Part shown: positions 4,625 to 57,585 of the stretch, piece by piece
Layout: every line of letters begins with the position of its first letter
How positions within the stretch are numbered: the stretch's first letter is position 1
Source: Mobula hypostoma
Taxonomy: Eukaryota
Direction: 5' to 3'
Length of the DNA: 64,000 nt
Assembly (NCBI RefSeq): GCF_963921235.1
Contig: NW_026948254.1
Coordinates: 124,001-188,000, forward strand
Position numbers and translations under genes: made by a program
Notes under the pieces: model-generated
What the model saw: the letters and a program-made list of their open reading frames with translations, nothing else
Databases searched by the model: none
Told to the model about the DNA's origin: nothing

Positions 4625-4669
<45 letters not shown>

Positions 4670-8744: not shown

Positions 8745-9625
8745 TGAATTTAGTGGCGGTTGTCATCCTGTCCCGGGGAAAGTGCGGTCTCTCCTGCACC
8801 ACACGGTACCCGGTGGGAATGGCAGCGGGGGATCTACTGGTCATTATCACTGAGGTCGTTTTGTATCAACTCAATAATCACTATTTTCCCGTTTGTTTCC
8901 TGAACGTCGCCTCTGTGTGCACTGTTCTCCGTGTCCTGTCCCGCGTTGCCGTGAACTGTTCCGTCTGGTTCACCGTCACTTTCACCTCCGATCGGTTTGT
9001 TGCCATTTGCTGTCAGAAACTGAAAACAAAGTACTGCCCGGGGAGAGCGGCGGCCGTGGTTCCAGCGCCATCTAGCGGTCTGTTCTGTCTGAAAACCGGC
9101 TCACTCTACTACACTAACAACATACCATGGTTGTATTATCCGAAGCCAAGTTACTTCACTGAACCGGCGTGGGTGGCGTATGACTGGTTTGACATCATTT
9201 AAACTCTGTTCTTCCCATTCGGGGGGATTCTGCTGCTCAACGCTCTGACAGTCTCACATTTCAGTGGTCAGTCGGGTCCGGAGGGGTCTGAGGGGTCAGA
9301 GCAAGGGGGTAAACAGCAGTGACCCGGAGATGGAGAGCGGGAAGAGGCCTGTGATTTTACTCTTCACCCTCTCCGGCAGCTTCATCCTCCTGTGGCTGAC
9401 GAATGTTGCAGAATTTATCTGTTATCACAACACCGGGATAGGAACACAGGGTATGATTCGGAAATTATTTTCGCCTATGCCGGATGTTTGCTAAGGAACT
9501 TCAGCTGCTGCACGAACACATTCATTTACGCCGCCACTCAGTCCAGATTCCGGGAGCAGGTGAAAAGCGTGGTGAAATATCCGTTCATTTCAGTACTCCG
9601 GTTCATTAACAGAGCAGCCCCCTAA
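8745..9625 (+). pseudogene. gpr139-like: GPR139-like class A GPCR pseudogene (copy A, exon 2 only)
   Basis: Acceptor ttctccag|TG AAT TTA; VNLVAVVILSRGKCGLS...SDRF...SDPEMES...CCTNTFIY...SRFR; in-frame TAA at 9200-9202, frameshifts near 9260 and 9450, deletions; no exon 1 found. Confidence 0.88.
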
Positions 9626-9866
9626 GGAAGCACAAACCTGATCACAGTCAGACCCGCTTCTCCCGACTTCTATCCTCTCTTCCCTAAGGTGACGCAGCTG
9701 GCTGAATATCGACGGACCGTATAGCTACGATGTCCATACAGTAAGCATTGTCACTCTCTTTCGACCGCACGTCTGGGAACGTGAAACTGTATATCCACTT
9801 CCATCGGATTCTCAGTCCCCAGGTCAATGTGTCAGGTGAATGACATCATCCTGCAGTCTCCGGGAA

Positions 9867-10110
9867 CAGTGACTCTCCCCCCACACTGCCCTCTGTCGGA
9901 GACCCCGTCCTCTCAGTGACCCTCCCCCCCACACTGCCCTCTGTCAGAGACCCCATCCTCTCAGTGACCCTCCCCCCACACTGCCCTCTGTCGGAGACTC
10001 CGTCCTCTCAGTGACCCTCCCCCCACACTGCCTTCTGTCGGAGACCCCGTCCTCTCAGTGACTCTCCCCCACACTGCCCTCCTTCGGATACTCTGAACTC
10101 TCAGTGACAA
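9867..10110. repeat. 47-bp minisatellite, ~5 copies (cagtgaccctccccccacactgccctctgtcggagaccccgtcctct)
   Basis: Unit starts at 9867, 9914, 9962, 10009, 10056, 10102. Confidence 0.92.
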
Positions 10111-10177
10111 TGAAGAGGTTCCACTTTCTCCTCAGTCCCCAGATACAGCGATTCTGTGTCCACAATTGAAAACAATA

Positions 10178-10790
10178 GAATCAGAATCAGAAGCAGGTTT
10201 ATGATCACCGGCATGTGACGTGAAATTTGTTAAATTACCAGCAGCAGTTCAATGCAATACATAATCTAGCAGAGAGAGAGAAAATAATAATAATACATGA
10301 AAAACATAATAAATAAACAAGTATATCAATTACGTATAGAGGGGATTTTTTTAAAGTATGCAAATACTGTATATTAAAAAAAAAGCTAGGTGGTGTCCAA
10401 TGCTTCAATGTCCATTTAGGAATCGGATGGCAGAGGGGAAGATGTTGTTCCTGAATCGCTGAGTGTGTGCCTTCAGGCTTCTGTACCTCCTCCCTGATGG
10501 TAACAGTGAGAAAAGGGCATTCTCTGGGAGCTGGAGGTCCTTAATAATGGACGCTGCCTTTCTGAGACACCGCTCCCTAAACATGTCCTGGGTACTTTGT
10601 AGTCCTGGGTACATCTTCGTCCCCAAGATAGAGCTGACTGGATTTACAACCTGCTGCATCTTCTATCGGTCCTGAGCAGTAGCCCCTCCATACCAGTGAT
10701 GCAGCCTGTCAGAATGCTCTCCACGGTACCACTATAGATGTTCCTGAGTGTATTTGTTGACATGCCAAATCCCTTCAACTCCCGATAAGA
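10178..10790 (-). mobile_element. Rex1/Babar-type LINE 3' fragment with (GATTCT)n tail
   Basis: ORF 10405-10659 (RKAASIIKD...LFSLLPSGRRYRSL..HT.RFRN..FP.AIR.LN); tail repeat at 10178-10195. Confidence 0.88.
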
Positions 10791-10974
10791 TAAAGTATAT
10801 TACCAATCAGAGTTACAAATTACAGCAATTCTCTAATATCTATAATGTCTGATGATGGTGGCCCTGCAGCCCTTCTTCCCGTTAAGTGTGACCAACCGAC
10901 CCTTGTACCAGGTGGTTGACACTACATCTGTTGTAGTGGTGACCATAACCCGTCCATCCAGTGGCGCAGAAACT

Positions 10975-11420
10975 CCGTTCATTGTTCCCGGTGGTTGTGA
11001 AGCCTCAGCCGTTGATCTATGTGGTGTTGAACCTGCATTAATTGTTCCCGGTGGTAGTGAAGCCTCAGCCATTGGTCCGTATGGTGTTGAACGTCCATCC
11101 AATGTTCCTTGTGTGAGTGACCAACAATCCATTGATCCCGCCGGGCTGACCATCAGTCCAATGTACCCGGTGGGGATGACCCAACGTCATTGATCCTTGT
11201 GGAGGGGGTGGGGTGACCAGACATCCAATTTTGCCGATGGAAGTTACCCTTCCATCCATTGATCCCGGTGAGGTGACGACCCATCCTTGTCTCCCGGTTC
11301 TGTGTCCCTACATCCATTGCTCTTGGAGGATTTGACCTTTCATCAATTATTCCCGGTGGAGGTGACGCTCCATCCACTCTTCCCTATGGATGTGACGCTT
11401 CATACACTGTTCCTGATAGA
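10975..11420. repeat. Degenerate 30-bp tandem repeat (10-codon period, S/T-P-P-G-T-M-D-G-like on the minus strand)
   Basis: ccattg(t/a)tcccggtgg recurring every 30 bp. Confidence 0.65.
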
Positions 11421-11899
11421 GGCTTGTCTTTGTTCATTTTATCTGATATCAACTCATAATGTCTGTCGCCATGGAGACGACGCCGGCAGTATCGGCCGTC
11501 ACTAACACTGAGTCCAACGTACGTCACTTTTCCTGCAGTCCGACTCTCAGTTACTTTGGTCGAAAGAGCAACTTACAGCCTCAAAATAAATGCTCAAACA
11601 CACAAGTAATGGCATTAATCGCACTCGGGGACCATTGTTTCGTTGAAACGTCGCCCCGACTGCTCAGACGCCTCCCACATCCGCAGGCTCCAGCGCTGGG
11701 CACCGACTGCTCAGACAACGCAGCTGATAATATCCAACCTAAAGGGGAAATCACAAATGATGCGTCAATAGCTCGTTATTACTTGTTTACTAGCTACTCT
11801 ATATATAGAATTGTAACATTATGCATCTCGCAACTGATCACTACTCATTTAGTCGACCGCAATATACTTACAGGTGCATAAAGGATGCGGTAATAGTGC

Positions 11900-13225
11900 G
11901 GAAGCATGTAACGAACAAACGATAATAGATTCCGTAATTCTAAATCATATCCGGCGGAAAATCAGAAAGCTTTCCTGTTGCTATATTGACTCACAAAGGC
12001 ATTAGACTTGTCCCACACTCATGGAGAATAGACGCTCTTAAAATATATAAACTGCACCCAGTCCTTGAGAAATTCTTTCAACATGTGGAAGCATTAGCGT
12101 ACTGTAATTACTGTAGCGAACAAACACAATAGAACAACCACGGTTATCAAAATAAACCAAGGTGTTTTTTTTTTCCCGGGCGACTGTGTAAATCCACTGT
12201 GGCTCTCTCCCGTTTTACACCCGCAATCTAATTTACTGAATCGGACGAAAAATGACATCAATTCAGAAACAATGGAGTCGATTATACTTTAATACCCTTT
12301 CTATACATGGTTGATTTGAAATTATTTGCTCCTTCATCAATGAAGAGAAAACAACTAATTCAAATAGCAGTACTATTTTCGAACGTTATAATTATGAACT
12401 TTGGACTGGATGAGTGTCGAGAATTTAACATACAGAAAGGTGCAACCGAGCTAATAGAATATAAGCCACAGCAGCGGGATACAATACAACCGATGGACGA
12501 ATATGGGGTGTAAATATCTGGTATATCAACAATGAATGAAAACAGATCATAGTTTCCTAAGGGAAAACATTTTGACAGAATTTACTTCAAGGTTTCAGAA
12601 AATCTGTTAAACGCAGCTCAACAGTAAAGATACAACAAAGGCGATACACACTTTCACTACACCCATATTAACGCATCATTTTGTCATAATATCCGCAACA
12701 GATCTGGAAATTTAAAAAGAAAAGTAAGAATTGAAATGGGATTTTTTTAGGTAAAAAATGTATATTCGAATTCGCTTAGATTAACTCTATTTATTATAGA
12801 AGAGGGACGAGGAATAACAGACATTAAACATTTACTGACGATACAACGACAGTCAGATACAACTTCTGACAATATATTTTCATCAACGAAAACCGTATTC
12901 AGCATTCGACGCGAGCACAGGCAATTCTGATAAGAAGTACAAACCACTGAACTGAAATGAGAGCACAACTCAGAAGTAAAGAAGTAATTATGAACATTGA
13001 AAAAAAAGTTATCTAATGGAAGAGCATGGCCCATGATGGGAGACTCCTCCCCCCACGATCTGAGCAGACTGGATTTACACAGGGAACCGTCGAACGCCCG
13101 GGTAAAAGTTGGAGACTTCCCAGAAACAAAGAGTTTCTTGTGGCAATGCAGGACCAAGTGGTTAACACACACACACACAAATCAAACATACTTATAAAAG
13201 ACAACACAATCAGCATGATAAATTA
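11900..13225 (+). mobile_element. Degenerate R4/Dong-clade non-LTR retrotransposon, RT region
   Basis: Remnant motifs YID..KA.D.VPHSW, GD..SPLW, LYM(D)DLKLFA, FGLD.C, GRGI, FPET..FLVAMQDQVVNT; many stops and frameshifts. Confidence 0.75.
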
Positions 13226-13229
13226 GAAA

Positions 13230-13233
<4 letters not shown>

Positions 13234-13289
<56 letters not shown>
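13234..13289. repeat. (GA)n microsatellite
   Basis: Perfect GA run. Confidence 0.95.
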
Positions 13290-13291
<2 letters not shown>

Positions 13292-18581: not shown

Positions 18582-19492
18582 TTAGATATTGCGTTTGTTA
18601 ATCATTTGAGTAATTGACGTGAGAGGATATTTCGCTGCGCTGATGAACTGCTCTCTGAACTTTGTCTGCGTTACCCCATAAATAAAAGTGTTTGTACAGC
18701 AACTTAATAACATCAGCATGTAACCGGTGTGTTCAACTATGTATTCCGTAACGTTGTAACTATTCTGATCCAACTCGGCGATGGTGTTATACAGGAATTC
18801 GGCGACATTTAGGGACCACAGAGTGATGAAGCTTCCGGAGATGGTGAGAAGTAAAATCACAGACCTCCTCCTGCTCTCCATCTCCGGGTCACTACGGTTA
18901 TCTCCCTTGGTATGGCCCCTCAGCCCCTTACGGACGCGACTTGTCACTAGGATGTGTCTGACTGTCAGAGCGTTGAACAGTAGTATTAACACGAACGGGA
19001 GTAACGGCGTTAGGACGGTGGAAAACATTCTATATCCCACCCACCCGGGATCCTCAAAGTAGGCCGGCTTTCGAATACAGTCCCAGGGTATATTGTCAAT
19101 CACGTTAACAGGACGAAATATAAAGAAGATGGGCACATTTTTAAAAAAGAACAAAACACCGGTTGTTGTCAGAATCACAGCCGCAGTTTTCCCGGTGCAA
19201 TACTTTGCTTTCAGCTTCTGCCTACAGATGGCGACAAACCGATCAAATGTAAAAGTGACGGTGAACCAGACAGAACAGTCAGTGGCTGCCTCTCCCAGGG
19301 CAGAGATCACACTGCATACGGGGGTGATGTCCAGGAAAGTCCCGGGGAAGTAATAATAACTGACCCGCCACAATATGACCGGAAAGACGATGGTTAGTAG
19401 ATCCGCCGTAGCCATGGCCACCAGGTAGCGGGTGGTGCAGGTGGAGATGCCGCACTTTCCCCGGGACAGGATCACAATCGCCACTAAATTCA
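18582..19492 (-). CDS. gpr139-like: GPR139-like class A GPCR copy B, exon 2 (911 nt; spliced product 325 aa)
   Basis: Intact frame covering late TM1 to TM7; acceptor cccccag|TG AAT; TFDRFVAIC, Cys in TM3 and ECL2, CCTNTFIY, helix-8 KFR. Confidence 0.92.
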
Positions 19493-20532: not shown

Positions 20533-20599
20533 CAGGAACACCAATAACGGCAATGATCATGTGACATATCTTCCTCACAAGGTAAAATGTTTCAAGCAT
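20533..20599 (-). CDS. gpr139-like: GPR139-like copy B, exon 1 (MLETFYLVRKICHMIIAVIGVP, phase 1)
   Basis: 67 nt, donor G|gtgaga; G+TG rebuilds Val in frame with exon 2; same geometry in copies C and D. Confidence 0.88.
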
Positions 20600-20835
20600 A
20601 CTGTGTGAGACTCAGCCTGTCTTCCAGCTGCCCGCGATCTCGCTGAAGAAACTCTGAGCTGATGAATCTCCACGGTCATTCATTTATACTCGCTCCAGCA
20701 CACTGAATATTCAATACTACACAAGGCTGACGTGTCTTCCAACAGCTGGGATAAAAATAAAAATAATATAATTCAAGTGAAATCCCAACTGTGATGAGGT
20801 ATGGATAGCTTGACACGAAATTGCAAAATCTCAAT
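20600..20835 (-). promoter_or_regulatory. Conserved proximal promoter/5' UTR of copy B
   Basis: TATAAAT at 20682-20688 (minus), TGACGTGT at 20728-20735, TGAATATTCA palindrome; highly similar upstream of copies C and D. Confidence 0.7.
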
Positions 20836-20924
20836 GACGACACGACATAACGGAGAAGTCAGTGAATATAGTTGTGAAACCTTCTCAGGCTGAACTCTAG
20901 GTTTCATAATTGCTGTTGTGGAAG

Positions 20925-21050: not shown

Positions 21051-21149
21051 ATTTTTCAGAGGAATGTTCGAGTAGCAATGCATCACCTGAGGCTTAATAG
21101 AAGTTGAGTAATGCAATAAGCATTGATCCGAAAGATAAGAGTAATTCAA

Positions 21150-21886: not shown

Positions 21887-22910
21887 TGTCACGTATCCCG
21901 TGACGGGTTAAAGAACCAGCAGAAATAGAAAGCACTTTGGAGTCCAGTATTGCTATTAACTAATACTATTTATTAGTAACTACGCAATACAGTAATTTAA
22001 ATGCAGGTATATCAAACAGAATNNNNNNNNNNNNNNNNNNNNNNNNNNNNNNNNNNNNNNNNNNNNNNNNNNNNNNNNNNNNNNNNNNNNNNNNNNNNNN
22101 NNNNNNNNNNNNNNNNNNNNNNNNNNNNNNNNNNNNNNNNNNNNNNNNNNNNNNNNNNNNNNNNNNNNNNNNNNNNNNNNNNNNNNNNNNNNNNNNNNNN
22201 NNNNNNNNNNNNNNNNNNNNNNNNNNNNNNNNNNNNNNNNNNNNNNNNNNTTCTTCAACTCTTGGGGTAAGCAAGTAGTCTTAAGATGATGAGTAAAGTT
22301 CAGTTCAGTTCCTGGTATTGTGCTGAGTACTGCTGGAGAGAAAGAGAAGGAGAGCTTTGAATCTCCAGGTGAGCTGATGCCGTTGATCTTCCCTTTGTCC
22401 TCCGAAATCCTTTAGAAGTCAACGACTGTGAGCACAACAAAGGGGGCCGTTCTTCTGTGGTTGAATTGTCAACCCAGGCGAGGATTGGACACACGAATAA
22501 CTGCCCACCGGTCACACCCTTTCTATACTGCAAGAACAACTGATCGATCCGCCTGATCCATCCTCCAAAATTCTCCCTTTCTGTGGGCACAACGAAGTTC
22601 ATTCAGTGTCCAAAGCCATGTGCCCGTAGGTCTATCATCTGACCTATTTATCTCACTGCGCTGAATACCAACTGTCTCTCAAACAGCTCCTCCCTTCTCT
22701 CTCTGTAAGAACGTACATGCAGGAAATGTCCCTGTAGAATGTATAAGTAAACTGTGAGCGGTCTTTGTCTCTCTCGCTCTCTCTCTCCCTCTCTTTCTCC
22801 CTCTCTTTCCCTTTCTTTCTCTGTCTTTTTAACAAGGTGTCTAGTGTATGGCACCTCATTCTCTCTCTTTTCAAAAGCACAGTTGATAGGGGTAACACAG
22901 GACCCCGTCA
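21887..22910 (-). mobile_element. Gypsy-type LTR, spanning an N gap
   Basis: Begins TGTCACGTATCCCGTGACGGG; homologous to solo LTR 60572-61497; no clear TSD. Confidence 0.6.
22023..22250. other. Assembly gap
   Basis: Run of N. Confidence 0.99.
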
Positions 22911-27107: not shown

Positions 27108-27263
27108 NNNNNNNNNNNNNNNNNNNNNNNNNNNNNNNNNNNNNNNNNNNNNNNNNNNNNNNNNNNNNNNNNNNNNNNNNNNNNNNNNNNNNNNNNNNNN
27201 NNNNNNNNNNNNNNNNNNNNNNNNNNNNNNNNNNNNNNNNNNNNNNNNNNNNNNNNNNNNNNN
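27108..27263. other. Assembly gap (probably a CA microsatellite, by homology with 58547-58610)
   Basis: Run of N preceded by ctcgttaatac...cacaaac, matching the reverse complement of the (TG)n flank near 58610. Confidence 0.9.
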
Positions 27264-29605: not shown

Positions 29606-29609
29606 AATA

Positions 29610-33824: not shown

Positions 33825-35742
33825 TTGTGCGTCTTAGAAACGCAGCGTCCAATATTACGGACCTCCGGCACCCAGGCCGTGCCCTTTTTCTCACTGTTAC
33901 CATCAGGGAGGAGGTACAGAAGCCTGAAGGCACACACTCATATAGTCATAATCATAGTCATAGTCATAGTCATACTTTATTGATCCCGGGGGAAATTGGT
34001 TTTCGTTACAGTTGCACCATAAATAAAAAATAGTAATAGAACCATAAATAGTTAAATAGTAATATGTAAATTATGCCAGTAAATTATGAAGTAAGTCCAG
34101 GACCAGCCTATCGGCACAGGGTGTCTGACCCTCCAAGGGAGGAGTTGTAAAGTTTGATGGCCACAGGCAGGAATGACTTCTTATGACGCTCTGTGCTGCA
34201 TCTCGGTGGAATGAGTCTCTGGCTGAATGTACTCCTGTGCCCACCCAGTACATTATGTAGTGGATGGGAGACATTGTCCAAGATGGCATGCAACTTAGAC
34301 AGCATCCTCTTTTCAGACACCACCGTCAGAGAGTCCAGTTCCATCCCCACAACATCACTGGCCTTACGAATGAGTTTATTGATTCTGTTGGTGTCTGCTA
34401 CGCTCAGCCTGCTGCCCCAGCACACAACAGCAAACACGATAGCACTGGCCACCATAGACTCGTAGAACATCCTCAGCATCGTCCGGCAGATGTTAAAGGA
34501 CCTCAGTCTCCTCAGGAAATAAAGACGGCTCTGACCCTCCTTGTAGACAGCCTCAGTTTTCTTTGACCAGTCCAGTTTATTCTCAATACGTATCCCCAGG
34601 TATTTGTAATCCTCCACCATGTCAGCACTGACCCCCTGGATGGAAACAGGGGTCACCAGTATCTTAGCTCTTCTCAGGTCCACCACCAGCTCCTTAGTCT
34701 TTTTCACATTAAGCTGCAGATAATTCTGCTCACACCATGTGACAACGTTTCCTACCGTAGCCCTGTACTCAGCCTCACCTCCCTTGCTAATGCATCCAGC
34801 TATGGCAGAGTCATCCGAAAACTTCTGAACATGACAAGACTCTGTGCAGTAGTTGAAGTCCGAGATGTAAATGGTGAAGAGAAAGGGAGACAAGACAGTC
34901 CCCTGTGGAGCCCCAGTGCTGCTGATCACTCTGTCTGACACACAGTGTTGCAAGCACACATACTGTGGTCTGCCAGTCAGGTAATCAAGAACCCATGACA
35001 CCAGGAAAACATCCACCTGCATCGCTGTCAGCTTCTCCCCCAGCAGAGCAGGCCGGATGGTATTGAACGCACTGGAGAAGTCAAAAAACATGACCCTCAC
35101 AGTGCTCGCTGGCTTGTCCAGGTGGGTGTAGACACGGTTCAGCAGGTAGACGATGGCATCCTCAACTCCTAGTCGGGGCTGGTAGGCGAACTGGAGGGGA
35201 CCTAAGTCTGGCCTGACCATAGGCCGGAGCAGCTCCAGAACAAGTCTCTCCAGGATGTTCATGATGTGGGAGGTCAATGCCACCGGTCTGTAGTCATAGA
35301 GGCCGCTGGGGCGCGGCGTCTTCGGCACAGGGACCAGGCAGGATGTCTTCCACAGCACAGGAACACTCCGGAGCCTCAGGCTCATGTTGAATACATGGCG
35401 AAGTACTCCACATAGCTGAGGGGCACAGGCTTTGAGCACACAGGCACACGCTCAGTGATTCAGGTACATTTTCTTCCCCTCTGCCTTCCGATTCCCAAAT
35501 GAACAATGTTTGGTCAATACCTCAGTATGTTTTAATATTCAGTATTTCTGTTTTTGCACGTTTTTTAAAAAAAAATTCAATATACGGAACCGATTTACTT
35601 GTTTATTTACTGTTAATATTACATTATTTGTTGTTATTGTTATTCTTTCCCTGCTACTTCATGTTAGCATGGAACTGCTGCTGCCAAGTTAACAAATTTC
35701 ACGTCACCTGCCGGTGATAATAAACCTGATTCTGATTCTGAA
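33825..35742 (+). mobile_element. Rex1-type 3' fragment with (GATTCT)n tail, split by a younger Rex1 insertion
   Basis: Halves 33825-33940 and 35442-35742 join into a continuous 3' end; aataaacctgattctgattctga tail. Confidence 0.78.
33941..35441 (-). mobile_element. Young 5'-truncated Rex1/Babar LINE with an uninterrupted 443-codon RT ORF (34108-35439)
   Basis: DYRPVALTSH, LQFAYQ, FFDFSSAFNTI, GAPQGTVLSPFLF, KFSDD; AATAAA plus (GACTAT)n tail; 13-bp TSD aggcacac(a/g)ctca at 33928-33940 and 35442-35454. Confidence 0.95.
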
Positions 35743-36229
35743 TCCGCACTCACGAGAACCCGGTCACACTCTGTGAATATCTTAGCGATACTCACCCATG
35801 ACGATAATCACCACATACCTCAATATTGATCCCGATCTGCCGTTCAGTATCCATCTAATGAAATTAATCCCATAACCCAGGACCCATGATTTATTACTGC
35901 AACGAGTATCTAGTCACAGTGGAAGTCTTTTCTTGTGTGTCAGACCACTCAATACATAAGCACTTCGTCAGAAACAAACCACAGAATATAGAATACTGTG
36001 TAGTATTCCCAGTGGAAATGCTGGTCGGTTCGTCGAATATGTAAATCCGTCTACCTACCTCACTATTAACAACGCTACCATTTTTTTTCATCTACAAAAC
36101 AACTGTCATTGTTGGTGCAAACGTAATGAATGCTGATGCTCTGTCGGTTGAAGCATTTTCACCATTACCAGGGTCATGTGTAGGGTGATTGAATGACTTT
36201 GCTTCATACCGGTGCGGACATGTGACGGG

Positions 36230-36900
36230 CTGCACCAGTGCTGGAGGAACGCAGCCGGTCAGGAAATGAATGAGCAGTTGAGGTTGCGGGTGCGAACCTA
36301 AAACAAAGCTGGATTATATAAAAAAAAAGGAGGAAGATGCCGAAAAAAGAATGTTTGGGGTCGCGGGAGGAAGACAAGCCGGAAGGTGATAGGTGAAGTC
36401 AGTTGATTGGAGTAACGTGACCAAGTAAGAGGCTGGGAGGTAATTAGCGGAAAAGGCAAAGTGCTTGAGAAGAAGGAACCTGACAGGAGAGGAGAGCGGA
36501 TCGTGGGTGAAAGGGAAGGAGGAGAGGCATCCGGGGGAGAGGAAAGACAGATGAGGAGAAGAGTAAGAGTCAGAGTGGAGAATTGCAGAAGAGGGAAGGG
36601 AGAGACGGAAATTTTGGGAGATGGAGATATCCATGTCCATGCCATAAGACAGGAGGCTATTTTGACGGAATAAAACATGTTACTCCTCCAATGAGAGATT
36701 GGCCATATCGTGGTAGAAGAGGAGGTTATAGATATGTCAGACCGGCAATGGGGATAGAAATGGAAACGGTTGGCTACTGGAATATTTTGTCGTTGGAGCT
36801 GATGTGCCGACAGTCGGCCAGAGAGAGGTCTGTTCGTATATTGCCACAGATGCCGCCTGACATGTTGACTTCAATCCAGTATTTTGTATGTGTTGCAATT
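36230..36900 (-). mobile_element. Old Penelope-like element fragment
   Basis: ggaggaacgcagccggtcagg terminus, purine-rich pLTR body similar to 63270-63640, short inverted terminus at ~36845-36895. Confidence 0.6.
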
Positions 36901-37204
36901 CATTCGATGAACGATCTGGTGGGTTGACTATCTTCGTAAGCCTGGATGCGATATTAGTTTGAGACCCTTCACTATATTACACGGACATACAAACAATTTA
37001 ATCTGCTTTATATAATTTTATTGTAAGATCTATCACCGAAACAATTCTCAGGGTGAAACAGACAGCCAATGACAATACAACATTGGTCTCTGATGTCCGT
37101 GTCCATGGAGACAAGGAATGACACGATCAACAATAACAATCATGAATCTGAGAGGTGAGTCTGAGCGTTTTTCGCAACAACATTCACCGACTATGAATCG
37201 TTTT

Positions 37205-37439
37205 AGAGATTTTGCAATTCCGTGTCAAGCTATCCATACCTCATCACATTTGGGAATTTACTTGAATGACATCATGATTATTTTTATCCCAGCTGTTGGA
37301 AGACACGTCAGCCTTGTGTAATATTGAATATTCAGTGTGCCGGAGCGAGTATAAATGAATGAGCGTGGAGATTCATCAGCTCAGAGTTTCCTTCAGCGAG
37401 ATCCGGGGCAGCTGGAAGACAGGTTGAATGTCACACAAT
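37205..37439 (+). promoter_or_regulatory. Conserved proximal promoter/5' UTR of copy C
   Basis: CAGCTG 37290-37295, ACACGTCA 37303-37310, TGAATATTCA, TATAAAT 37350-37356. Confidence 0.7.
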
Positions 37440-37506
37440 ATGCTTGAAACATTTTTCCGTGTGAGAAAGATATACTTCTTGATCATTGCAGTTATTGGTG
37501 TTCCCG
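37440..37506 (+). CDS. gpr139-like: GPR139-like copy C, exon 1 (MLETFFRVRKIYFLIIAVIGVP, phase 1)
   Basis: 67 nt, donor G|gtaaga; an in-frame upstream ATG also exists at 37428. Confidence 0.88.
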
Positions 37507-38841: not shown

Positions 38842-39749
38842 TGAATTTAGTGGCGATTGTGATCCTGTCCCGGGGAAAGTACGGCCTCTCCACCTGCACC
38901 ACTCGCTACCTGGTGGCCATGGCAACGGATCTACTGACCATCATCTTTCAGGTTATATTGGGGCGGGTCTTTAACGATTACTTGCTCGGGACGTTTCTGG
39001 ACATCACCGCCGTATGCAGTGTGAACTATGTCCCCTTAAGGGCTGCCACTGACTGTTCTGTCTGGTTCACCGTCACCTTTACGTTTGATCGGTTTGTCGC
39101 CATCTGTTGCCAGAAGCTGAAAGCAAAATATTGCACCGGGAAAACTGCGGCTGTAGTTTTGACAACAACCGGCGTTCTTTTCTGTTTTAAAAATGTGCCC
39201 TACTTCTTTATGTATCGACCAATGAAAGTAATTGATAATATACCCTGGGGCTGCATTCGTAAATCGAGTTATTATACGGATCGCAGGTGGGTGGGATATA
39301 GCTGGCTTTCTACCGTTCCAGCGCCATTGCTCCCGTTCGTGTTAATACTCCTGTTCAACACTCTGACAGTCAGACACATTTTAGTGACTAGTCGCGTCCG
39401 TAAGGGGCTGAGGGGTCAGAGCAAGGAGGAGAACCGCAGTGACCCGGAGATGGAGAGCAGGAGGAGGTCTGTGATCTTACTTCTCACCGTCTCCGGAAGC
39501 TTCATCACCCTGTGGTCAGTAAAAGTTGCCGAATTCCTTTATTACACCATTGCTGGATTGGATCAGAATAGTTACAACGATTCGGAATATATATTTCAAC
39601 ATTCTGGATACATGCTGATGATATTAAGTTGCTGCACAAACACGTTTATTTATGGGGTAACTCAGTCCAAGTTCAGAGAGCAGTTCATCAGCGCAGTGAA
39701 ATATCCGCTCACGTCAATTATTCAACTAGTTAATAAACAAAACATCTAA
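38842..39749 (+). CDS. gpr139-like: GPR139-like class A GPCR copy C, exon 2 (908 nt; spliced product 324 aa)
   Basis: Acceptor tttctccag|TG AAT; open frame with TFDRFVAICC and CCTNTFIY; one-codon deletion in TM2 relative to B and D. Confidence 0.9.
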
Positions 39750-41519: not shown

Positions 41520-42786
41520 AAATGGCGCGCAGAGAGCGACAGAGACTGGGGAGCGGAGCCGACGAGTCGGTGAGACGAGGGAGAGAGAGCGACTAGGACT
41601 ATGGAGAGAGCAACGGAGGGATGGACAGATTCGGAGACGAAAAGGAGTCTGCGGTGAGAGAGAGACCGACGCAGACATAGTGGGGGATATGAGAGAGCCT
41701 GGCAGAACAGACACGGGCGACAGAGAGACTTTGGAAAGAGTTTGACGAAGGGGGTGGAGATGCTTGTGGGAAAGGAGATTGCGAAAGAGAGCCGAAGGGA
41801 GAGAGACGAGGAGAGAGAGTCGGACGCGAGAGAGACACTGGGAGAGGATACGTCACGGAGGGAGAGCGTAGGAGAGACGGAGTGGCCAGGTAGAGAGTGT
41901 CTGGGAGCAGCGGGAGAGAGGGGCTGGAAAGCGGGAGAGACTGAGGACGGAGAACATCAGGAAGAGACTGACTGGGTGACTGGAGTGCTGAAGAGAGTGA
42001 GACCGGGGCTGGATGTGGCGACGAGAGAGAGTATGTTGGGGAGTGGGGGGGGGGTGTGGGGGAGAGCATGAGGAGATTAAGAGGGACCTTAAATGCAGAT
42101 AGTGGCCATGGTGAGCAAAGAGATTGGGGTGGGTAGAGATGTTAGGTGTGGATAAAGATTTGGCTTGAGAAGAGAGTTCGGAGTGGGGATGGAACTTGGG
42201 TTGATGAGAGACCAGGATGAGGAGAGAGACCGAGACAGAGAGAGAAGCAAGAGAGGTTGAAACCTGGGATGGAAATTGAGGGGAGAAAGAGAATGGAGTA
42301 TAGAGAGTCTGGAGGACAGAGAGATGGGTGGGAATAGGTAGGGGTTGAGAATGAGCGAGAAAGAGAGAGAATGTGCTGGAAAGAGAGAGCCGGTAGAAGT
42401 GACTGTGCGAAAAAGAGACTGGTGAGATGGCGAAGAACCTAGGGTTCAGAGAAAGACGGATGGGGAGACACACTGGAGGTTATAGTCTGGGGGACAGAAG
42501 AACGATGAGGTAAATGGGGAGAGAAAGCGGGGGAGAGAGACGGTCGAGATAGGCAGAGGGAGAATAGGATGCGAGAGAAACTGTGGGAGAGAGAGAAAGA
42601 CGGGGAAGTAAGAAAGACTGGGTAGAGGGAGAGTGACGTAGAGAGAGAGTAGGGAGAGTTGGTCTGGTGGATAGAGAGATGGGGGGAGAGTGGGTAGAGA
42701 GAGAGACTAGCCGAGGAAGGCTGAGGGGATAGATAGAGTCGGATGATAGACATTGTGGGTTCCGGGAGATGCTGAGAGAGAGCGAG

Positions 42787-42866
<80 letters not shown>

Positions 42867-44210
42867 GCGAGAGAGTAGGCAGAGTGAGGTAGAAAGTAGA
42901 GAGAGAGTGGGGGACGTGAAATACTAGGAGATAAGACAGCGGGGAGAGAGCCTGCGGAGAGAGAAATTATGGGGAGACATAGTCTGGGGAGAAGGAGATT
43001 GGAGGAGAAAGACGACATAGGAGTGCTAGTGGCGTGAGAGATCCTGGGGTGAGAGAGCGAGAGAGACAGACTGAGGGGTGAGAGAGAGAGAGACTGAGGG
43101 GTGAGAGAGAGAGAGAGAGACTGAGGGATGAGAGAGAGAGAGACTGAGGGGTGAGAGAGAGAGAGAGAGACTGAGGGATGAGAGAGAGAGAGAGACTGAG
43201 GAGTGAGAGAGACAGAGACTGGGGGTGAGAGAGAGAGAGACTGAGGAGTGAGAGAGACAGAGACTGGGGGGTGAGAGAGAGAGAGACTGAGGGGTTGAGG
43301 GAATGACTGCGGATTCAGACAAACTGGGCAGGAAGAGCCTTGGGGAAAGAGAACGCGGAACGGGAGAGACGAGGGGAGCGACACTGGGGAGCGACAGAGC
43401 CAGGGCAGAAGGCGTGAGAGAAAAACGAGGGACACAAAGGGTCGGGGAAGATAAGATGTGGAAGGAGAGAGAGAGCTGGAGGCGAAAGAGACGGGGGGCA
43501 CTGCAGGAAGAAACGGGAGCGGGTGAACGTACAGAGAACAGCGAGAGAGAGAGAGAGGTGGAGACTCAACGAGAAGACTGGGAGAAAGAAGGAATTTGGG
43601 GGACAGAGGGTCCGGGATGCTGAGGAGAGTGAAAGTAGGGAGGGAGAGTGAGACGCAGAGAGAGACTGTGGATTGAGAGAAAGAGCAGGGGAGAGAGACG
43701 GTGGACTTGAACGGGGACAGAGATCGGGCTGAGGAGAGAGACCTGCAGGACAGATGGTTCGAAAGATCGGAGTGTGGAAGGAAATTGGGGTGGGAAAGGC
43801 ACTGGAAGGAGAGAGATCAGATGTCAAAAGCGACGGATGGTGGGACGGTAGAGGCAGCCAGAGGAAAAATGTGGTGGGAGGGGGAGAGAAGAAAGAGAGA
43901 GAGAGAGACGCGCGTAGGAAAGGCGGACTGGAGAGAGGGTGAGACGGGGAGAGAGAATATCGATAGAACACGAGAGGGAGGCCGGAGGGAGTGATTTGTC
44001 GGGGGTTGTTGAGACAGTTGGAGAGAGACCTCAGGTCTGGAGAGAGACGCAGGTGACTGACTGGGAGATGATAGAGACTAGGAGAAAGCCCGGTGGAGGT
44101 GAGGCGAGAGACTAGATGTTAGAAAGAGCCGGCAGAGCAAGAGACTGGAGGAGGGCGATAGAGAGACTGGGGGCTGAGTGAGAGACTGGGATGAGGGAAG
44201 ATAGGGCATT
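41520..44210. repeat. GA-rich low-complexity block with (GT)n(GA)n (42788-42865) and a gactgagggg(t)(ga)n tandem array (43045-43295); short CR1 fragments on both sides
   Basis: Direct inspection. Confidence 0.88.
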
Positions 44211-47395: not shown

Positions 47396-48923
47396 GTGGA
47401 GATTGCGGAGGCATTAACAATGATCTTTCAAAAGTCGATAGATTCTGGCATGGTTCTGGAGGACTGGAAGATTGCAAATGTCACTCCGTTATTTAAGAAG
47501 GGGGCAAGGAAGCAAAGGGGAAATTATAGACCTGTTAGCTTGACATCGGTGGTTGGGAAGTTGTTGGAGTCGATTATCAAATATGAGGTTACAGAGTACC
47601 TGGAGGCATATGACAAGATAGGCAGAACTCAGCATGGATTCCTTAAAGGAAAATCCTGCCTGACAAACCTATTACAATTTTTTGAGGAAATTACAAGTAG
47701 GCTAGACAAGGGAGATGTAGTGGATGTTGTATATTTGGATTTTCAGAAGGCCTTTGACAAGGTGCCACACATGAGGCTACTTAACAAGATAAGAGCCCAT
47801 GGAATTACGGGAAAGTTACATACGTGGACAGAGCATTGGCTGATTGGCAGGAAACAGAGAGTGGGAATAAAGGGATCCTATTCTGGTTGGCTGCCGGTTA
47901 CCAGTGGTGTTCCACAGGGGTCCGTGTTGGGGCCGCTTCTTTTTACATTGTACATCAACGATTTGGATTATGGAATAGATGGGGCTTTGTGTCTAAGTTT
48001 GCTGACGATACAAAGATAGGTGGAGGGGCCGGTAGTGCTGAGGAAACAGCGAGTCTCAAGAGAGACTTGGATAGATTGGAAGAATGGGCAGAGAAGTGGC
48101 AAATGAAATACAATGTTGGAAATTGTATGGTTATGCACTTTGGCAGAAAAATTAAACGGGCAGACTATTATTTAAATGATGAAAGAATTCAAAGTTCTGA
48201 GATGCAACGGGACTTGTGAGTCTTTGTACAGGATATCCTTAAGGTTAACCTCCAGGTTGAGTCGGTGGTGAAGAAGGCGAATGCAATGTTAGCATTCATT
48301 TCTAGAGGAATAAAGTATCGGATCAGGGATGTGATGTTGAGGCTCTATAAGGCGCTGGTGAGACCTCACTTGGAGTACTGCGGCCAGCTTTGGTCTCCTT
48401 ATTTAAGAAAGGATGCGCTGACGTTGGAGAGGGTACAGAGAAGATTCACTAGAATGATTCCGGGAATGAGAGGGTTAACACATGAGGAACGTTTGTCCGC
48501 TCTTGGACTGTATTCCTTGGAGTTTAGAAAAATGAGGGGAGGCCTCATAGAAACATTTCGAATATTGAAAGGCATGGACAGAGTGGATGTGGCAAAGATG
48601 TTTCCCATGATGCGGGAGTCTAGTACGAGAGGGCATGACTTAAGGATTGAAGGGCACCCATTCAGAACAGAGATGCGAAGATTTTTTTTTGCCAGGGGGT
48701 GGTGAATCTATGGAATTTGTTGCCACGGGCAGCAGTGGAGGGCAAGTCATTGGGTGCATTTAAGTCAGAGATTGATAGGTATCTGAGTAGCCAGGGCATC
48801 AAAGGTTCTGGTGAGAAGGCGGGGGAGTGGGATTAAATGGATCAGCTCATGATAAAATGGCGGAGCAGACTCGATTTGTCGAATGGCCGACTTCTGCTCC
48901 TTTGTCTTATGGTCTTATGGTCT
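47396..48923 (+). mobile_element. Younger 5'-truncated CR1 LINE (RT with frameshift and stop, 3' UTR)
   Basis: DWKIANVTPLFKKG, NYRPVSLTSVVGK, QHGF, YLDFQKAFDKVPH, SGVPQGSVLGP, KFADDTK; gtcttatg tail. Confidence 0.95.
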
Positions 48924-50357: not shown

Positions 50358-51540
50358 AAATCAGAATCAGCTTTATTATCACCGGCATGTGATGTGAACT
50401 TAGCAGCAGCAGTTTAATGCAATACATAATTTAGCAGAGAGAAAACACAATAATAAATAAATTAAAAGCAATAATACTTAATAAGTAAATCAATTATGGT
50501 ATACATATACGTATTGAATAGATAAAAACTGTGCAAAAACAGAAAAAACAGAAATGAGGTATTGTCCAAAGATTCAATGCCCATTTAGGAATCGGATAGC
50601 AGAGGGGAGAAGCTGTTCCTGAATCGCAGAGTGTGTGCCTTCAGGCTTCTGTACCTCCGACCTGATGGTAACTGTGAGAAAAGGACATGCCCTGGGTGCT
50701 GGAGGCCCTTAATAATGGTGACTTTCTGAGACACCGCTCCCTAAAGATGCCCTGGGTACTTTGTAGGCCAGTACCCAAGATGAAGCTGACTCGACTTACA
50801 ACTCTCTGCAGCTTCTTTCTGTCCTCTGCCGTAGCCCCTCTATACCAGGCATTGATGCAGCCTGTCAGAATGCTCCCCACTGTACAGCTATAGAAGTTTT
50901 TTGAGTATGTTTGTTGACATGCCAAATCTCTCCAAACTCCTACTGAACTATAGCCGCTGTCTTGCCTTCTTTATAACTACATCTGTATGTTGGGACCAGG
51001 TTAGATCCTCAGAGATCTTGGTACCCAGGAACTTGAAACTGCTCACTGTGACCACTTCTGATCCCTCTGTGAGGATTGGTATGTGTTCCGTCTTCAATGA
51101 GCTCTTTGGTCTTACTGACGTTGAGTGCCGGGCTGTGCTGCGGCACCATTCCACTTGTTGGCATATCTCACTCCTGTACGCCCGCTCGTCACACCCTGAG
51201 ATTCTACCAACAATGGTTGTATCGTCAGCAGATTTATAGATGATATTTGAGCCACACAGTCATGTGTATATAAAGAGTAGAGCAGTGGGATAAGCACACA
51301 CCTCTGAGTGTCCGGTGTTGATCATCAGCGAAGAGGATATGTTATCACCACTCCTCACAGACTGTGGTCTTCCGGTTAGGAAGTGGAGGACCCAATTGCA
51401 GAGCGAGGTACAGAGGCCCAGGTTCTGCAACTTCTCAATCAGGTTAGTGCGAATGATGGTATTAAATGCTGAGCTGCAGTCGACGAAAAGCATCCTAAAG
51501 TAGGTGTTTGTTTTGTTCAGGTGGTCGTTTGATAATTTAT
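50358..51540 (-). mobile_element. Rex1/Babar-type LINE 3' fragment with (GATTCT)n tail
   Basis: [43 protein letters not shown]. Confidence 0.9.
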
Positions 51541-51577
51541 GATCCATTATTTTTCCTCCAGAGTGAGTCGCGTGACA

Positions 51578-52736
51578 GCGAGCACTGTGAGGGTCATGTT
51601 TTTTTGACTTCTCCAGTCCTTTCAACACCATCCGCCCTGCTCTGCTGGGGGAGAAGCTGACAGCGATGCAGGTGGATGCTTTCCTGGTGTCATGGATTCT
51701 TGATTACCTGACTGGCAGACCACAGCTACGTATGCTTGCAACACTGTGTGTCCGACAGAGTGAATCAGCAGCACTGGGGCTCCACGGGGAAATGTCTTGT
51801 CTCTCTTTCTCTTCACCATTTACACCTCGGACTTCAACTACTGCACAGAGTCTTGTCACCTTCAGAAGTTTTGCGATGACTCTGCCATAGTTGGATGCAT
51901 CAGCAAGGGAGGCGAGGCTGAGTACAGGGCTACGGTAGGAAACTTTGTCACATGGTGTGAGCAGAATTATCTGCAGCTTAATGTGAAAAACACTAAGGAG
52001 CTGGTGGTAGACCTGAGGAGAGCTAAGGTACTGGTGATCCCTGTTTCCATCCAGGGGGTCAGTGTGGACATGCTGGAGGATTGCAAATACCTGGGGATAC
52101 GAACTGACAATAAACTGGACTGGTCAAAGAACACTGAGGCTGTCTCCAGGAAGGGTCAAAGCCGTCTCGACTTCCTGAGGAGACTGAGGTCCTGTAACAT
52201 CTGCCGGACGATGCTGACGATGTTGTACGAGTCTGTGGTGGCCAGTGCGATCATGTTTGCTGTTGTGTGCTAGGGCAGCAGGCTGAGGGTGGTAGGGACC
52301 AACAGAATCAACAAACTCATTCGTAAGGCCAGTGATGTTGTGGGGATGGAATTGGACTCTCTGACAGTGGTGTCTGAAAAGAGGATGCTGTCTAAGTTGC
52401 ATGCCATCTTGGACAATGTCTCCCATCCACTACATAATGTATTGGTTGGGCACAGGAGTACATTCAGCCAGAGACTCATTCCACCGAGATGCAACACAGA
52501 GCGTCATAGGAAGTCATTCTTGCTTGTGGCCATCAAACTTTACAACTCCTCCCTTGGAGGGTCAGACACTCTGAGCCAATAGGCTGGTCCTGGACGTATT
52601 TCCTGTCATAATTTACATATCACTATTTAACTGTTTATGGTTTTATTACTATTTAATTATTTATGATACAACTGTAACGAAAACCAAATTCCCTCGGGAT
52701 CAATAAAGAATGACTACGACTATGACTATGACTATG
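51578..52736 (+). mobile_element. Rex1/Babar LINE 3' fragment of the same young subfamily as 33941-35441
   Basis: Near-identical to the reverse complement of 33945-35105, with frameshifts and a stop; (GACTAT)n tail. Confidence 0.93.
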
Positions 52737-53905: not shown

Positions 53906-54964
53906 AAAGATAACACCTCACGCTAATTTATACTACAAAATACGCATCCAATAATCCTATGTTCTTCGTATGAGATTTCCATGATATGGAGAAATGGTTA
54001 TAACTAGTGAACACATGCAGGTTTCTAATAATTATTAAACTACGAATGAAGCATCTGTTCCTCCTCCGCATCAAGGAGAGAATGAAAGATTCATCGCTGA
54101 TATCTAAGATATTCCACGTTCGGCAACTTTCTGGTGAAATACTTTTGGATCCTCTCCACCGCAACACGCACTTTACTTATGGAGAACAGAAAGGTCACGA
54201 TACATTAATCAGGCCAATATTAGATATTATTGTATCATGACCTTTCCCGTCAGTGAACGCGGGTATTCGGTATGTACTGAACACCACATTATCAATCCGT
54301 ACCGCTGCTTTCGCTGATGTTTGGACTTCCATTTCCTTGTCCGTCTCTACATCAGCACTCTCGAGAACCCCGTCACTCTTCGTGAATATCCGTGCCCTAT
54401 TCATCCATGGAAGGAAACCAATACGTACTGTACCTCAATACTGACCCCAATCAGCCCTTTGCTGACCATCAGTCAAACTGATCAATTTCAGCCCATAACC
54501 GACGGCCTGTGAGCTGATAACTGCACCGAGTGTACAGACAGTCAAAGGATCTTAAAGCCAATCAGTCCAGACCATTCAATACATAAGCACATCGATGTAA
54601 CACGACAAGAAAAAAAAACAGAATATGCGATATTGTGTTTTATTTACAGCGCAAGTGCAGTTCAGATGGTGAAATATGTAAATATCGCTGTCTACCCCAC
54701 CGTCAACAACGCTCCCAATTTTGTTCATCCGCAAAGCAATTGTCTTTGTTGGTATAAATGTAATGAATGCAGATGCTCGGCCCGTTTAAGTATTTGCGCC
54801 CATTCGAGGGTCCTGTGCACGGTGATGGAATTACTTTGCTTCATACTGCTACGAGGCCTTGATGGCAGCCGGTTCGGCAATAACAATCAATACACCGAGA
54901 GGTGGGCCTGGAGTGTTTCACAACAACATTCACTGACTTTTCAGATCGTCATTTCTCCGTCTTT

Positions 54965-55197
54965 GCGATGTTGCAATTTCGCATCAAGCTAGTCATACCT
55001 CATCACAATTGGGACTTTACTTGACTGACATCATGTTTATTTTTACCCCGGCTGTTGGAAGACACGTCAGCCTTGTGTAGTATTGAATATTCAGCGTGCT
55101 GGAGCGAGTATAAATGAATGAGCGTGGAGATTCATCAGCTCAGAGTTTCTTCAGCGAGATCGCGGGCAGCTGGGAGTCAGGCTGAATCTTTCACAGA
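54965..55197 (+). promoter_or_regulatory. Conserved proximal promoter/5' UTR of copy D
   Basis: ACACGTCA 55062-55069, TGAATATTCA, TATAAAT 55109-55115. Confidence 0.7.
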
Positions 55198-55264
55198 ATG
55201 CTTGAAACATTTTACCGTGTGAGAAAGATATGGTACATGGTCATTGCCGTTACTGGTGTTCCTG
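55198..55264 (+). CDS. gpr139-like: GPR139-like copy D, exon 1 (MLETFYRVRKIWYMVIAVTGVP, phase 1)
   Basis: 67 nt, donor G|gtaaga. Confidence 0.88.
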
Positions 55265-56674
55265 GTAAGAACATAGGCGAACTAATATTTGCAGTTCTTT
55301 GTGCGCGGTCTTTGGACTTGTTCCTTTACCGACATGAATGCGGGTGTATCAGTGAGTGCGCAGCAGACGTTGTGACAAAAACTTTGTGTTCGTTCAGAAG
55401 TTCCCTTGAAGTTTCAGCTGTGGCCTCCGCTGAAAATAAACCGGCAGCTGAAACTGATATAGAGTGGGATATCGGGGAAAAGGCTTCATTTTGCTGAATC
55501 ATGACAAGCAGTTTTGGATTATCATTGCAAAGCTGTTGTTAAAATAAGCTCCGATAATCCGGTGCGCTCGGCACCTTCACCGGCTGCTTTGTGTTATTCC
55601 GAATCAATAGCGCAACATGCGTTAAATACAAATTTAAAGGTATTGCTTTGTGTTTTAAGAAGTTGCTGCAAGTTTGAAGGGAACTTGAGAAGCGAATCCC
55701 CGGTGAGATTCAGGAGAGCACGGTAGATATCACTTGTGACTTAGACTCCGCACCATCGGGAGTTTCCACGATTCAAATTAGGGTCTGCACGCGATATAGT
55801 GAACCAGGAATTTTTCCACGTCCCATTATCAGAGAAATGAAGAGGGAATTAAGAGAGAACCCTGCTGGTGTCAGTTAGAGTTCAGACGGGATAAGTTTCA
55901 TGCAATTCTCCGATCTGGAAGAACAAACATTGAAATATTTAGAATAACGCTGCAGTAATTTGGAGCAAACCCTAACAGGCACATGCTTTGATGTACATAT
56001 TCTGTTTTCTCCTTTGGAAATTGGATGGATTAAACACTAACTTCTAACATATTTGAAACATTCAGCGAGTCAGGCAAAATCTTTAAAAGCGAAAATTGAA
56101 CTTTCTCTTCAGTTTCCTTGAAAACAACGTGAAGGAACACTCGCAAGAGTGGCTACAGAATTCATAAGTAGCTAGCCAAGGGAGGCCACGGTGGGCGGGT
56201 GACAAACAGAAGTCGAGGAGGATAGGAAGATAATACAACGGGAGAATGAACTTTGCTGGGAAATTTGTAAATAGGCAGCGGTGTGGGAGCGGGGTTCTGC
56301 GCATGCGGAGAATGCCGGAACACAGGTGACGGTATCGCGGCAATCAGAATCGCTGAGCAAGTTGCCGAGCGACCAAGCTTTAGAAATCAGTCGAAAACCT
56401 AATGGTGGGTGTTGGAAATTGATACCCCCAAAGCACCCTGAGCGATCAGTTGACAGAGCCTCCTTCCCAAATTCTGCTCCTCCTCGAGTACTGCACCCTT
56501 TTCACCAGAATGCACGTGTATGAGGCTTCTGCGACCCCCGCATTACACCTTAGAAACCTCCAGAAGCCAGCTGTCTGGAAAGTTTTAATGTTCTCCATTT
56601 ACAGCTAATCTCCACACTGAGAACCATGGAGTGGCGAGATAATAATTCACTCATTCTTTTTGCTATTCCCGCAG

Positions 56675-57585
56675 TGAACGTTGTGGCGATTGTGATCCTG
56701 TCCCGGGGAAAGTGCGGTCTCTCTACCTGCACCACTCGCTACCTGGTGGCCATGGCAACGGCGGATCTAATGACCATCGTCTTTCCGGTGATATTGTGGC
56801 GGGTCAGTTATTATTACTTCCCTGGGACTTTCCTGGACATCACCCCCGTATGCAGTGTGATCTCTGCCCTGGGAGAGGCAGCCACTGACTGTTCTGTCTG
56901 GTTCACCGTCACTTTTACATTTGATCGGTTTGTCGCCATCTGTTGCCAGAAGCAGAAAGCAAAGTATTGCACCGGGAAAACTGCGGCTGTGGTTCTGACA
57001 ACAATCGGTGTTTTGCTTGGTTTTAAAAATATGGCCAACGCCTTTGTATATTTTCCTGTGAAAGTGATTGACAATATACCCTGGGACTGTATTACAAAGT
57101 CGGATTACTTTACAGATCCCGGCTGGCTGGGATATAGGTGGCTTTCGACAGTTCTAAGGCCATTGATCCCCTTCGTATTTATACTAATGCTCAACGCTCT
57201 GACAGTCAGGCACATTTTGGTGACTAGTCGCGTCCGTAAGGGGCTGAGGGGTCAGAGCAAGGCGGAGAACCGCAGTGACCCGGAGATGGAGAGCAGGAGG
57301 AGGTCTGTGATCTTACTTCTCACCATCTCCGGAAGCTTCATCATCCTGTGGTCGGTGAATGTTGTCGAATTCCTTTATAGCGTCATTGCCGGATTGGATC
57401 AAACTGAGTACAATGGCTCTCAATGCATTTTTCAACACACCGGATACATGCTGATGATATTAAGTTGCTGCACAAACACTTTTATTTATGGGGTAACTCA
57501 GTCCAAATTCAGAGAGCAGTTCGTCAACGCAGCGAGATATCCACTCGTGTCAATTATTCAATTAATTCATATACAAATTATTTAA
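56675..57585 (+). CDS. gpr139-like: GPR139-like class A GPCR copy D, exon 2 (911 nt; spliced product 325 aa)
   Basis: Acceptor ttcccgcag|TG AAC; intact frame with TFDRFVAICC, PWDC and CCTNTFIY. Confidence 0.92.

Follow-up and report, generated by a model that had tools for sequence, protein, structure and literature searches.

A receptor gene cluster of Mobula hypostoma belongs to a very large elasmobranch family of class-A receptors, a candidate ligand-diverse repertoire

A stretch of Mobula hypostoma DNA that carries several copies of one seven-transmembrane receptor gene raises the question of what these copies are for: do they form a repertoire of receptors for different ligands, do they belong to a known receptor family, or are they the product of duplication under weak constraint? 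The window analysed here is the whole of that stretch, 64 kb of contig NW_026948254.1 (assembly GCF_963921235.1, positions 124,001 to 188,000). A first-pass annotation had described three intact two-exon genes encoding proteins of 324-325 amino acids, together with one pseudogene, and this was borne out by gene models, by tblastn with long open reading frames (ORFs), and by a family hidden Markov model (HMM) run on the six-frame translation. The window contains exactly four receptor copies: A, B, and C are intact two-exon genes for rhodopsin-class G protein-coupled receptors (GPCRs), and D is a pseudogene (Table 1). The reading that we favour, and hold to be fairly probable, is that they are part of a functional, ligand-diverse receptor repertoire that is specific to elasmobranchs and has a common transducer, where the ligand diversity, the common transducer, and any sensory role are what we infer.

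Variation within the family is concentrated on the ligand-facing side of the receptor. Shannon entropy was calculated from an alignment of 63 family members, with class-A generic numbering anchored at N24 (1.50), D53 (2.50), R107 (3.50), P188 (5.50), W248 (6.48), and N290 (7.49); the anchor in transmembrane helix (TM) 4, I133 = 4.50, is approximate, the family having no tryptophan at 4.50. Thirty-three pocket positions were listed beforehand from general knowledge of class-A structures, not from model coordinates. Mean entropy at these positions was 1.70 bits, against 1.14 in the rest of the outer-half helices (Mann-Whitney p = 0.0012), 1.28 in the extracellular loops, and 0.56 in the cytoplasmic half (p = 3e-16). 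Very low entropy was found in intracellular loop (ICL) 1, the DRF/ICL2 region, the C-terminal part of ICL3, TM7 (SCCTNTFIY), and helix 8, and high entropy in the N-terminus, upper TM3, the end of TM4 with extracellular loop (ECL) 2, upper TM5, and upper TM6 with ECL3 and upper TM7. The most variable sites are 3.29, 3.32, 3.33, the two residues after the ECL2 cysteine, 6.51, 7.35, 7.39, 7.42, and 7.43, and the cytoplasmic motifs are kept across deeply diverged subfamilies. The first-pass annotation had claimed just such a fixed intracellular side and variable ligand-facing side. The motifs that it quoted are present, namely SRGKCGLSTCTTRY in ICL1 and SRVRKGLRG..DPEMESRRRS in ICL3, as are its divergent segments (KNVPIFFIFRP, KNVPYFFMYRP, and KNMANAFVYFP).

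The family extends far beyond the window. It is matched by 1,915 database proteins at E<=1e-3, the best 120 of which are all from elasmobranchs (11 species, both sharks and rays); nearly all of these 120 were automatically named 'probable G-protein coupled receptor 139' by NCBI. An exhaustive profile search of 50%-identity representatives yielded 131 clusters at E<=1e-30 and 612 at E<=1e-10, and the divergent clusters that were looked up were again all elasmobranch (catsharks, bamboo and zebra sharks, Mustelus, little skate, and a stingray). This is a copy number far beyond a handful, in line with the expansion proposed earlier, and members from sharks and rays are 65-70% identical in protein sequence. 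As found here, it is a very large receptor family that is specific to elasmobranchs. No description of the expansion was found in the literature, at partial journal coverage that included a catshark sensory-genome paper, a shark-nose paper, and a vertebrate GPCR cartography. Lineage-specific expansions of class-A receptors are well known; this family and its placement appear to be undescribed, and its genes are already visible in the NCBI annotation under the GPR139 label.

A, B, and C encode class-A (rhodopsin-class) GPCRs. They match Pfam 7tm_1 (PF00001) with E values of 2.9e-22, 2.4e-15, and 9e-20, respectively, and the microswitch residues N24, D53, C82/C161, D106-R107-F108, W248, and N290...Y294 are near-invariant, with two variants: DRF in place of DRY, and a TM7 motif (N-T-F-I-Y) without proline. 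The AlphaFold2 (AF2) model has seven TM helices and helix 8, with a predicted local distance difference test (pLDDT) score of 69 and a predicted template modelling (pTM) score of 0.66. Foldseek gave TM values of 0.7-0.75 to many class-A receptors, and structure searches of Swiss-Prot models and the PDB returned generic peptide-receptor matches only, with no discrimination between families. No N-x-S/T sequon was seen in the short N-terminus (~10 residues) of A, B, and C; a conserved one (NVT, NDS, and NGS) is present in ECL3 at residues ~269-271, an unusual position for class A.

The name 'GPR139' appears, from the scores, to be a best-hit label only. A single gene matches solved GPR139 at E 7e-10 and the ghrelin receptor at 7e-9; the family profile has GPR139 as its best solved-structure match (2.5e-15), followed by the next solved receptor at 6e-9. 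Human GPR139 is only ~20% identical to the family. Like the family, human GPR139 (PDB 7VUG) has a TM7 N-x-x-x-Y motif without proline and keeps W6.48; unlike the family, GPR139 and GPR142 are single genes, and their pocket residues are not conserved among the elasmobranch copies. Known agonists of GPR139 are aromatic amino acids and adrenocorticotropic and melanocyte-stimulating hormone (ACTH/MSH) peptides, and in the portion of the review literature consulted the mammalian receptor is treated mostly in connection with the habenula. The contacts of GPR139 and GPR142 with aromatic agonists are, we take it, 3.33, 5.43, 6.51, and 7.38. In the family, 3.33 and 6.51 are among the most variable sites (entropy digits 9 and 7) and only W6.48 is fixed. 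That the genes are true orthologues or co-orthologues of GPR139/GPR142, sensing aromatic amino acids as in mammals, is thus highly improbable. The NCBI naming, the top rank of GPR139 among solved structures, and the shared proline-less motif are outweighed by the low identity, the nearly equal ghrelin-receptor score obtained from a single sequence, the hundreds of database clusters that outscore GPR139 (612 at the E<=1e-10 threshold), pocket positions that differ between copies instead of being fixed, and the fact that the nearest kin are other non-mammalian orphans.

Those kin were identified in a maximum-likelihood tree, built without bona fide GPR139 or GPR142 sequences, in which the elasmobranch family forms a monophyletic group (ultrafast bootstrap 99, Shimodaira-Hasegawa-like approximate likelihood ratio test 92), and its sister is a clade of amphibian and sturgeon orphans (100/99); a separate clade of orphans adjacent to TMEM183A is next-closest. 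The amphibian/sturgeon orphan (P0229 from Pleurodeles, P0422 from Xenopus tropicalis, and P0438 from Acipenser) is also automatically named 'probable GPR139' and is of similar length, at ~340 amino acids. It shares with the elasmobranch family DRF/DRY, a 'VAICC' or 'VIVCC' segment, and the ICL3 motif RVRxGL...DPEM..RR.S, and differs from it in occurring once per species among the hits found, with no expansion, and in being only 32-33% identical. The TMEM183A-adjacent orphan (P0232 from Latimeria and P0288 from Scyliorhinus canicula) is automatically named GPR139 or GPR142, and the family profile matches the Latimeria member at E 1e-45; unlike the family, it has ERF instead of DRF and an ICL3 without the DPEM motif. 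It is conserved as one gene in sharks, coelacanth, teleosts, amphibians, and reptiles, is at times fused with TMEM183A in gene models, and occurs in sharks alongside the expanded family. A published classification (PMC6504862) lists 'GPR210' groups under GPR139/GPR142, and this orphan is probably one of them. The family's Atlas neighbours are clusters resembling FMRFamide receptors and GHSR, in agreement with a published analysis (PMC8557429) that makes protostome MIP, proctolin, and FMRFamide-type receptors the sister group of the GPR139/142 supergroup. The family belongs only loosely to that supergroup, and the earlier description of the genes as GPR139/GPR142-like holds as a best-hit label and fails as a statement of nearest kinship.

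The region upstream of the coding sequence is conserved together with the receptors. The 300 bp upstream of the ATG are 86-88% identical among A, B, and C, compared with 70-73% for the intron. This 5' cassette contains two GCTG(TT)GGAAGACA-like elements, ~140 nt and ~25 nt upstream of the ATG, each including an E-box-like CAGCTG (the distal copies of A and B lie at 20733-20748 on the minus strand and 37290-37305 on the plus strand, respectively), with a TATAAA motif between them. A spliced transcript of a relative begins upstream of this TATA. In public run X7, contig 24 extends from 55066 through exon 1 of gene C to exactly 55264, where it passes into eleven bases matching the exon-2 start of a paralogue and then runs on into exon 2, which is the predicted splice. 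At the same acceptor there is a second loose end with another exon-1-like sequence. Transcription and correct splicing of family members are thus documented for at least one relative, and since the X7 transcript reaches 55066, much of the 5' cassette is 5' untranslated region (UTR). Three other public runs, which like X7 were presumed to be RNA without being recorded as such, showed exon-only coverage and were not counted towards transcription, because conservation-filtered DNA could give the same pattern.

Birth-and-death evolution, the mode first proposed for the cluster, fits a group of genes that includes a pseudogene, but it does not act alone. Sliding-window identity between A and C is 95-100% over codons ~51-110 and 70-85% elsewhere in the variable regions, and the longest identical run is 120 nt, an event expected with a probability of ~1e-8 at 86% background identity. 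This run takes in the last part of ECL1 and the whole of TM3, pocket sites 3.29, 3.32, and 3.33 among them. The sequence pattern shows gene conversion between A and C across a pocket-forming segment, so that conversion moves such segments between paralogues. In TM2-TM3 (codons 50-112), 60 of 63 residues are the same in C and its Mobula birostris counterpart, and the closest M. birostris relative of A has a different TM3 pocket segment. This suggests that a C-type donor converted the A lineage, on orthology assignments that are not themselves proven.

We therefore propose the following course of events. The family would have arisen from an ancient gene of jawed vertebrates, one that amphibians and sturgeon still have as a single copy, and the cluster would have been shaped by local duplication, inversion, pseudogenisation, and conversion between paralogues. 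All members keep one cytoplasmic face, comprising ICL1, DRF with ICL2, DPEMESRR in ICL3, NTFIY in TM7, and helix 8; this common face and the common 5' cassette suggest the same transducer and common regulation. Residues of the orthosteric pocket differ from copy to copy, and each copy may thereby recognise a different small ligand or peptide. Together, the copies would constitute a ligand-diverse sensor repertoire whose array is renewed by duplication, conversion, and loss.

How far selection supports this proposal was assessed by codon comparison of the three coding sequences A, B, and C, a number that does not permit a site-level test. Nei-Gojobori ratios of non-synonymous to synonymous change (omega) are 0.33, 0.40, and 0.44, and pooled pN/pS is 0.65 for the pocket (range 0.43-0.91), 0.54 for other outer-helix sites, 0.32 for the extracellular loops, and 0.33 for the cytoplasmic half. 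These omega values indicate purifying selection on the intact copies overall, and the pocket is the least constrained class.

Several points weigh against a repertoire diversified for new ligands. No site class among the A, B, and C codons reached an omega above 1, so the excess of non-synonymous change at the pocket that the first-pass annotation had implied was not found. Relaxed constraint explains the pattern as well as diversifying selection does, and could be what the pocket variability reflects. Synonymous divergence among the three genes is ~2x higher in the outer half than in the cytoplasmic half, which indicates that the near-identity of their loops does not come from protein-level selection alone; part of the invariant-loop signal among A, B, and C is due to gene conversion or nucleotide-level constraint. 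The AF2 model is only moderately confident (pLDDT 69), and the pocket sites were placed by generic numbering instead of from its coordinates. Finally, a survey of catshark olfactory epithelium lists no GPCR among the 50 most specific genes (PMC11979771), an argument that is weak because receptor genes are lowly expressed.

The same data bear on whether the expansion is largely neutral, that is, segmental duplication in a repeat-rich region followed by drift under relaxed constraint, in which case the variable pocket would simply be the least constrained part and the members mostly redundant or decaying. An omega of 0.33-0.44 is high for a GPCR, one of the four copies is a pseudogene, gene B has lost a codon in TM2, and the intergenic DNA is rich in reverse-transcriptase fragments and minisatellites. 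Drift does not readily account for the intact ORFs, the 65-70% protein identity between shark and ray members, cytoplasmic motifs that are invariant across deeply diverged subfamilies, a 5' cassette conserved well above intron level, or transcription with correct splicing. The variability, moreover, is focused on pocket-facing sites and not spread over all outer-helix sites. We regard a largely neutral origin as quite unlikely.

If the copies do form a ligand-diverse repertoire, its ligands could be environmental or internal. A role as environmental chemoreceptors is a possibility that we hold tentatively, the pattern of conservation being what suggests it. It is doubtful that the family goes as far as to be the missing large chemoreceptor repertoire of sharks and rays, evolved independently within class A; were this true, its members would be expressed in olfactory, gustatory, or solitary chemosensory cells and would offset the near-absence of canonical odorant receptors. 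The internal alternative is an immune or neuro-immune repertoire comparable to the chemokine, formyl-peptide, or MRGPR expansions, in which pathogens or the diversity of endogenous peptides would drive the variation of the pocket. The fold resembles that of peptide, chemokine, and opioid-type receptors, and the GPR139 supergroup was ancestrally peptide-activated (PMC8557429); the structural matches are, however, generic to class A (TM ~0.7, 15-20% identity) and indicate no particular family, and a copy number in the hundreds is unusual among immune GPCRs. We consider this alternative unlikely.

Table 1. Receptor genes and related features of the window (positions are those of the 64-kb stretch)
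Feature	Position	Strand	Remarks
Pseudogene D	8745..9616	+	exon-2 remnant, splice acceptor retained; found by tblastn; HMM match split over two frames
Gene A, exon 2	18582..19492	-	second half of TM1 to stop codon; ORF; acceptor CAG/TG; spliced model 325 amino acids
Gene A, exon 1 coding part	20533..20599	-	22 codons + 1 nt; donor GGTGAG
Gene A, conserved 5' cassette	20600..20922	-	5' UTR and proximal promoter
Gene B, conserved 5' cassette	37127..37439	+	matches cassettes of A and C
Gene B, exon 1 coding part	37440..37506	+	spliced model 324 amino acids
Gene B, exon 2	38842..39749	+	intact ORF
Gene C, conserved 5' cassette	54878..55197	+	at least 55066-55197 transcribed in a relative
Gene C, exon 1 coding part	55198..55264	+	spliced model 325 amino acids
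Gene C, exon 2	56675..57585	+	product 100% identical to P0012 (Mobula hypostoma)
Gene C, gene-conversion tract	56824..56943	+	120 nt identical to A 19343-19224; sliding-window identity, longest identical run
Copy of far-upstream flank of B	62733..63624	+	blastn; 68% identical to 35753-36596

The three intact genes share one architecture. Exon 1 encodes 22 residues (MLETF[YF].VRKI...GVP) plus one base, and is followed by a phase-1 intron of 1.0-1.4 kb located inside TM1, with GGTAAG or GGTGAG donors and acceptors formed by a pyrimidine tract and CAG ((Y)nCAG). The gene for P0012 spans 2388 bp, the same as gene C. The database protein nearest to A is P0001, from another contig of Mobula hypostoma; it is only 95% identical and has been annotated as the 319-amino-acid product of a gene with a single exon, starting at an in-frame ATG in the region of the intron-exon 2 boundary. 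Some annotated family members are probably mis-modelled, without exon 1. The codon missing from gene B, a deletion private to it, lies just before D2.50 (AMATDLL vs AMATADLL), and B also has Cys36Tyr in ICL1. That B might be a disguised pseudogene was considered, and is made less likely by two observations. It departs from the family at 3 of 99 conserved sites (family mean 2, maximum 8), within the family range, and its odd TM2-TM3 sequence (VILGRVFN.YL.G...NYVPLRAATDC) is also present in the Mobula hypostoma paralogue P0008, which makes this motif a subfamily trait and not a sign of decay.

The reading frame of pseudogene D is broken by a stop codon at 9200-9202, by the loss of 2 nt near 9254, and by the gain of 1 nt near 9425, which together shift ICL3 and TM6 into another frame; neither exon 1 nor a 5' cassette was recognisable upstream of it. 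Its identity to A, B, and C is ~44% at the protein level and 72% at the DNA level. In the tree, a clade restricted to myliobatiform rays (100/99) contains A, B, and C; D falls in the core clade, yet outside the batoid subclade, and is therefore the remnant of a different, older lineage. A 47-bp tandem repeat (5 copies, 89% matches) lies at 9867-10108, ~250 bp downstream of D. The fifth cassette that the first-pass annotation thought probable was not recovered: neither the family HMM, run on six-frame translations, nor nhmmer, run with the 5' cassette, detected a further copy in the window, and the sole trace is the duplicated flank at its right-hand end (Table 1), which may be the upstream region of a fifth gene with exon 1 ~470 bp past the window end.

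D and A lie on one contig and B and C on another, so the relative orientation of the two pairs rests on scaffold joins. Two gaps of N (22023-22250 and 27108-27263), both between A and B, are crossed by no gene model or 5' cassette. ORFs or fragments of reverse transcriptase from non-LTR (non-long-terminal-repeat) retrotransposons are found between the receptor genes at 34108-35439 (minus strand), 47396-48705 (plus strand), and 51260-52273, matching Pfam RVT_1 and carrying an ALKBH8_N-like tail. Spread of the receptors by transposable elements was considered and rejected: homology between copies has no common sharp ends, and extends over the 5' cassette, the intron, exon 2, and flanking sequence of variable length. 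The upstream homology of B and C is broken by an insertion, which fits an old segmental duplication. Purine-/pyrimidine-rich minisatellite arrays occupy 1-5400, 41600-44000, and 63606-64000, with units that include 37 bp x25 at 1817-2750 and 28 bp x14 at 63606-64000, and yield long spurious ORFs rich in proline, serine, and leucine on both strands.

Canonical odorant receptors are very few in cartilaginous fishes, which nevertheless have keen chemical senses; one published account calls their nose a de facto vomeronasal organ (PMC10116579). Set against this background, the family is a concrete candidate, open to test, for a sensory or immune repertoire that has been overlooked, and its ligand could be sought through the single-copy relatives in amphibians and sturgeon. 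Even if it is not sensory, it represents a massive lineage-specific expansion of vertebrate GPCRs hidden by a misleading 'GPR139' annotation. The closest parallels are the odorant receptors (ORs) of vertebrates, their trace amine-associated receptors (TAARs), and the lineage-specific class-A chemoreceptor expansions of invertebrates (PMC11886862). The family has no sequence kinship with any of these beyond class A. It also differs in that its coding sequence is split by the phase-1 intron in TM1, and in that the N-terminus has no glycosylation site and the N-x-S/T sequon is in ECL3. In other respects the systems are alike: receptors are small (~325 amino acids) with short termini, copies number in the hundreds and occur in genomic clusters with pseudogenes, the cytoplasmic side is conserved and the pocket variable, and paralogues undergo gene conversion. 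Two of the features by which such repertoires are recognised, large lineage-specific copy number in clusters with pseudogenes, and pocket variability combined with a constant signalling side, are found in the elasmobranch family.

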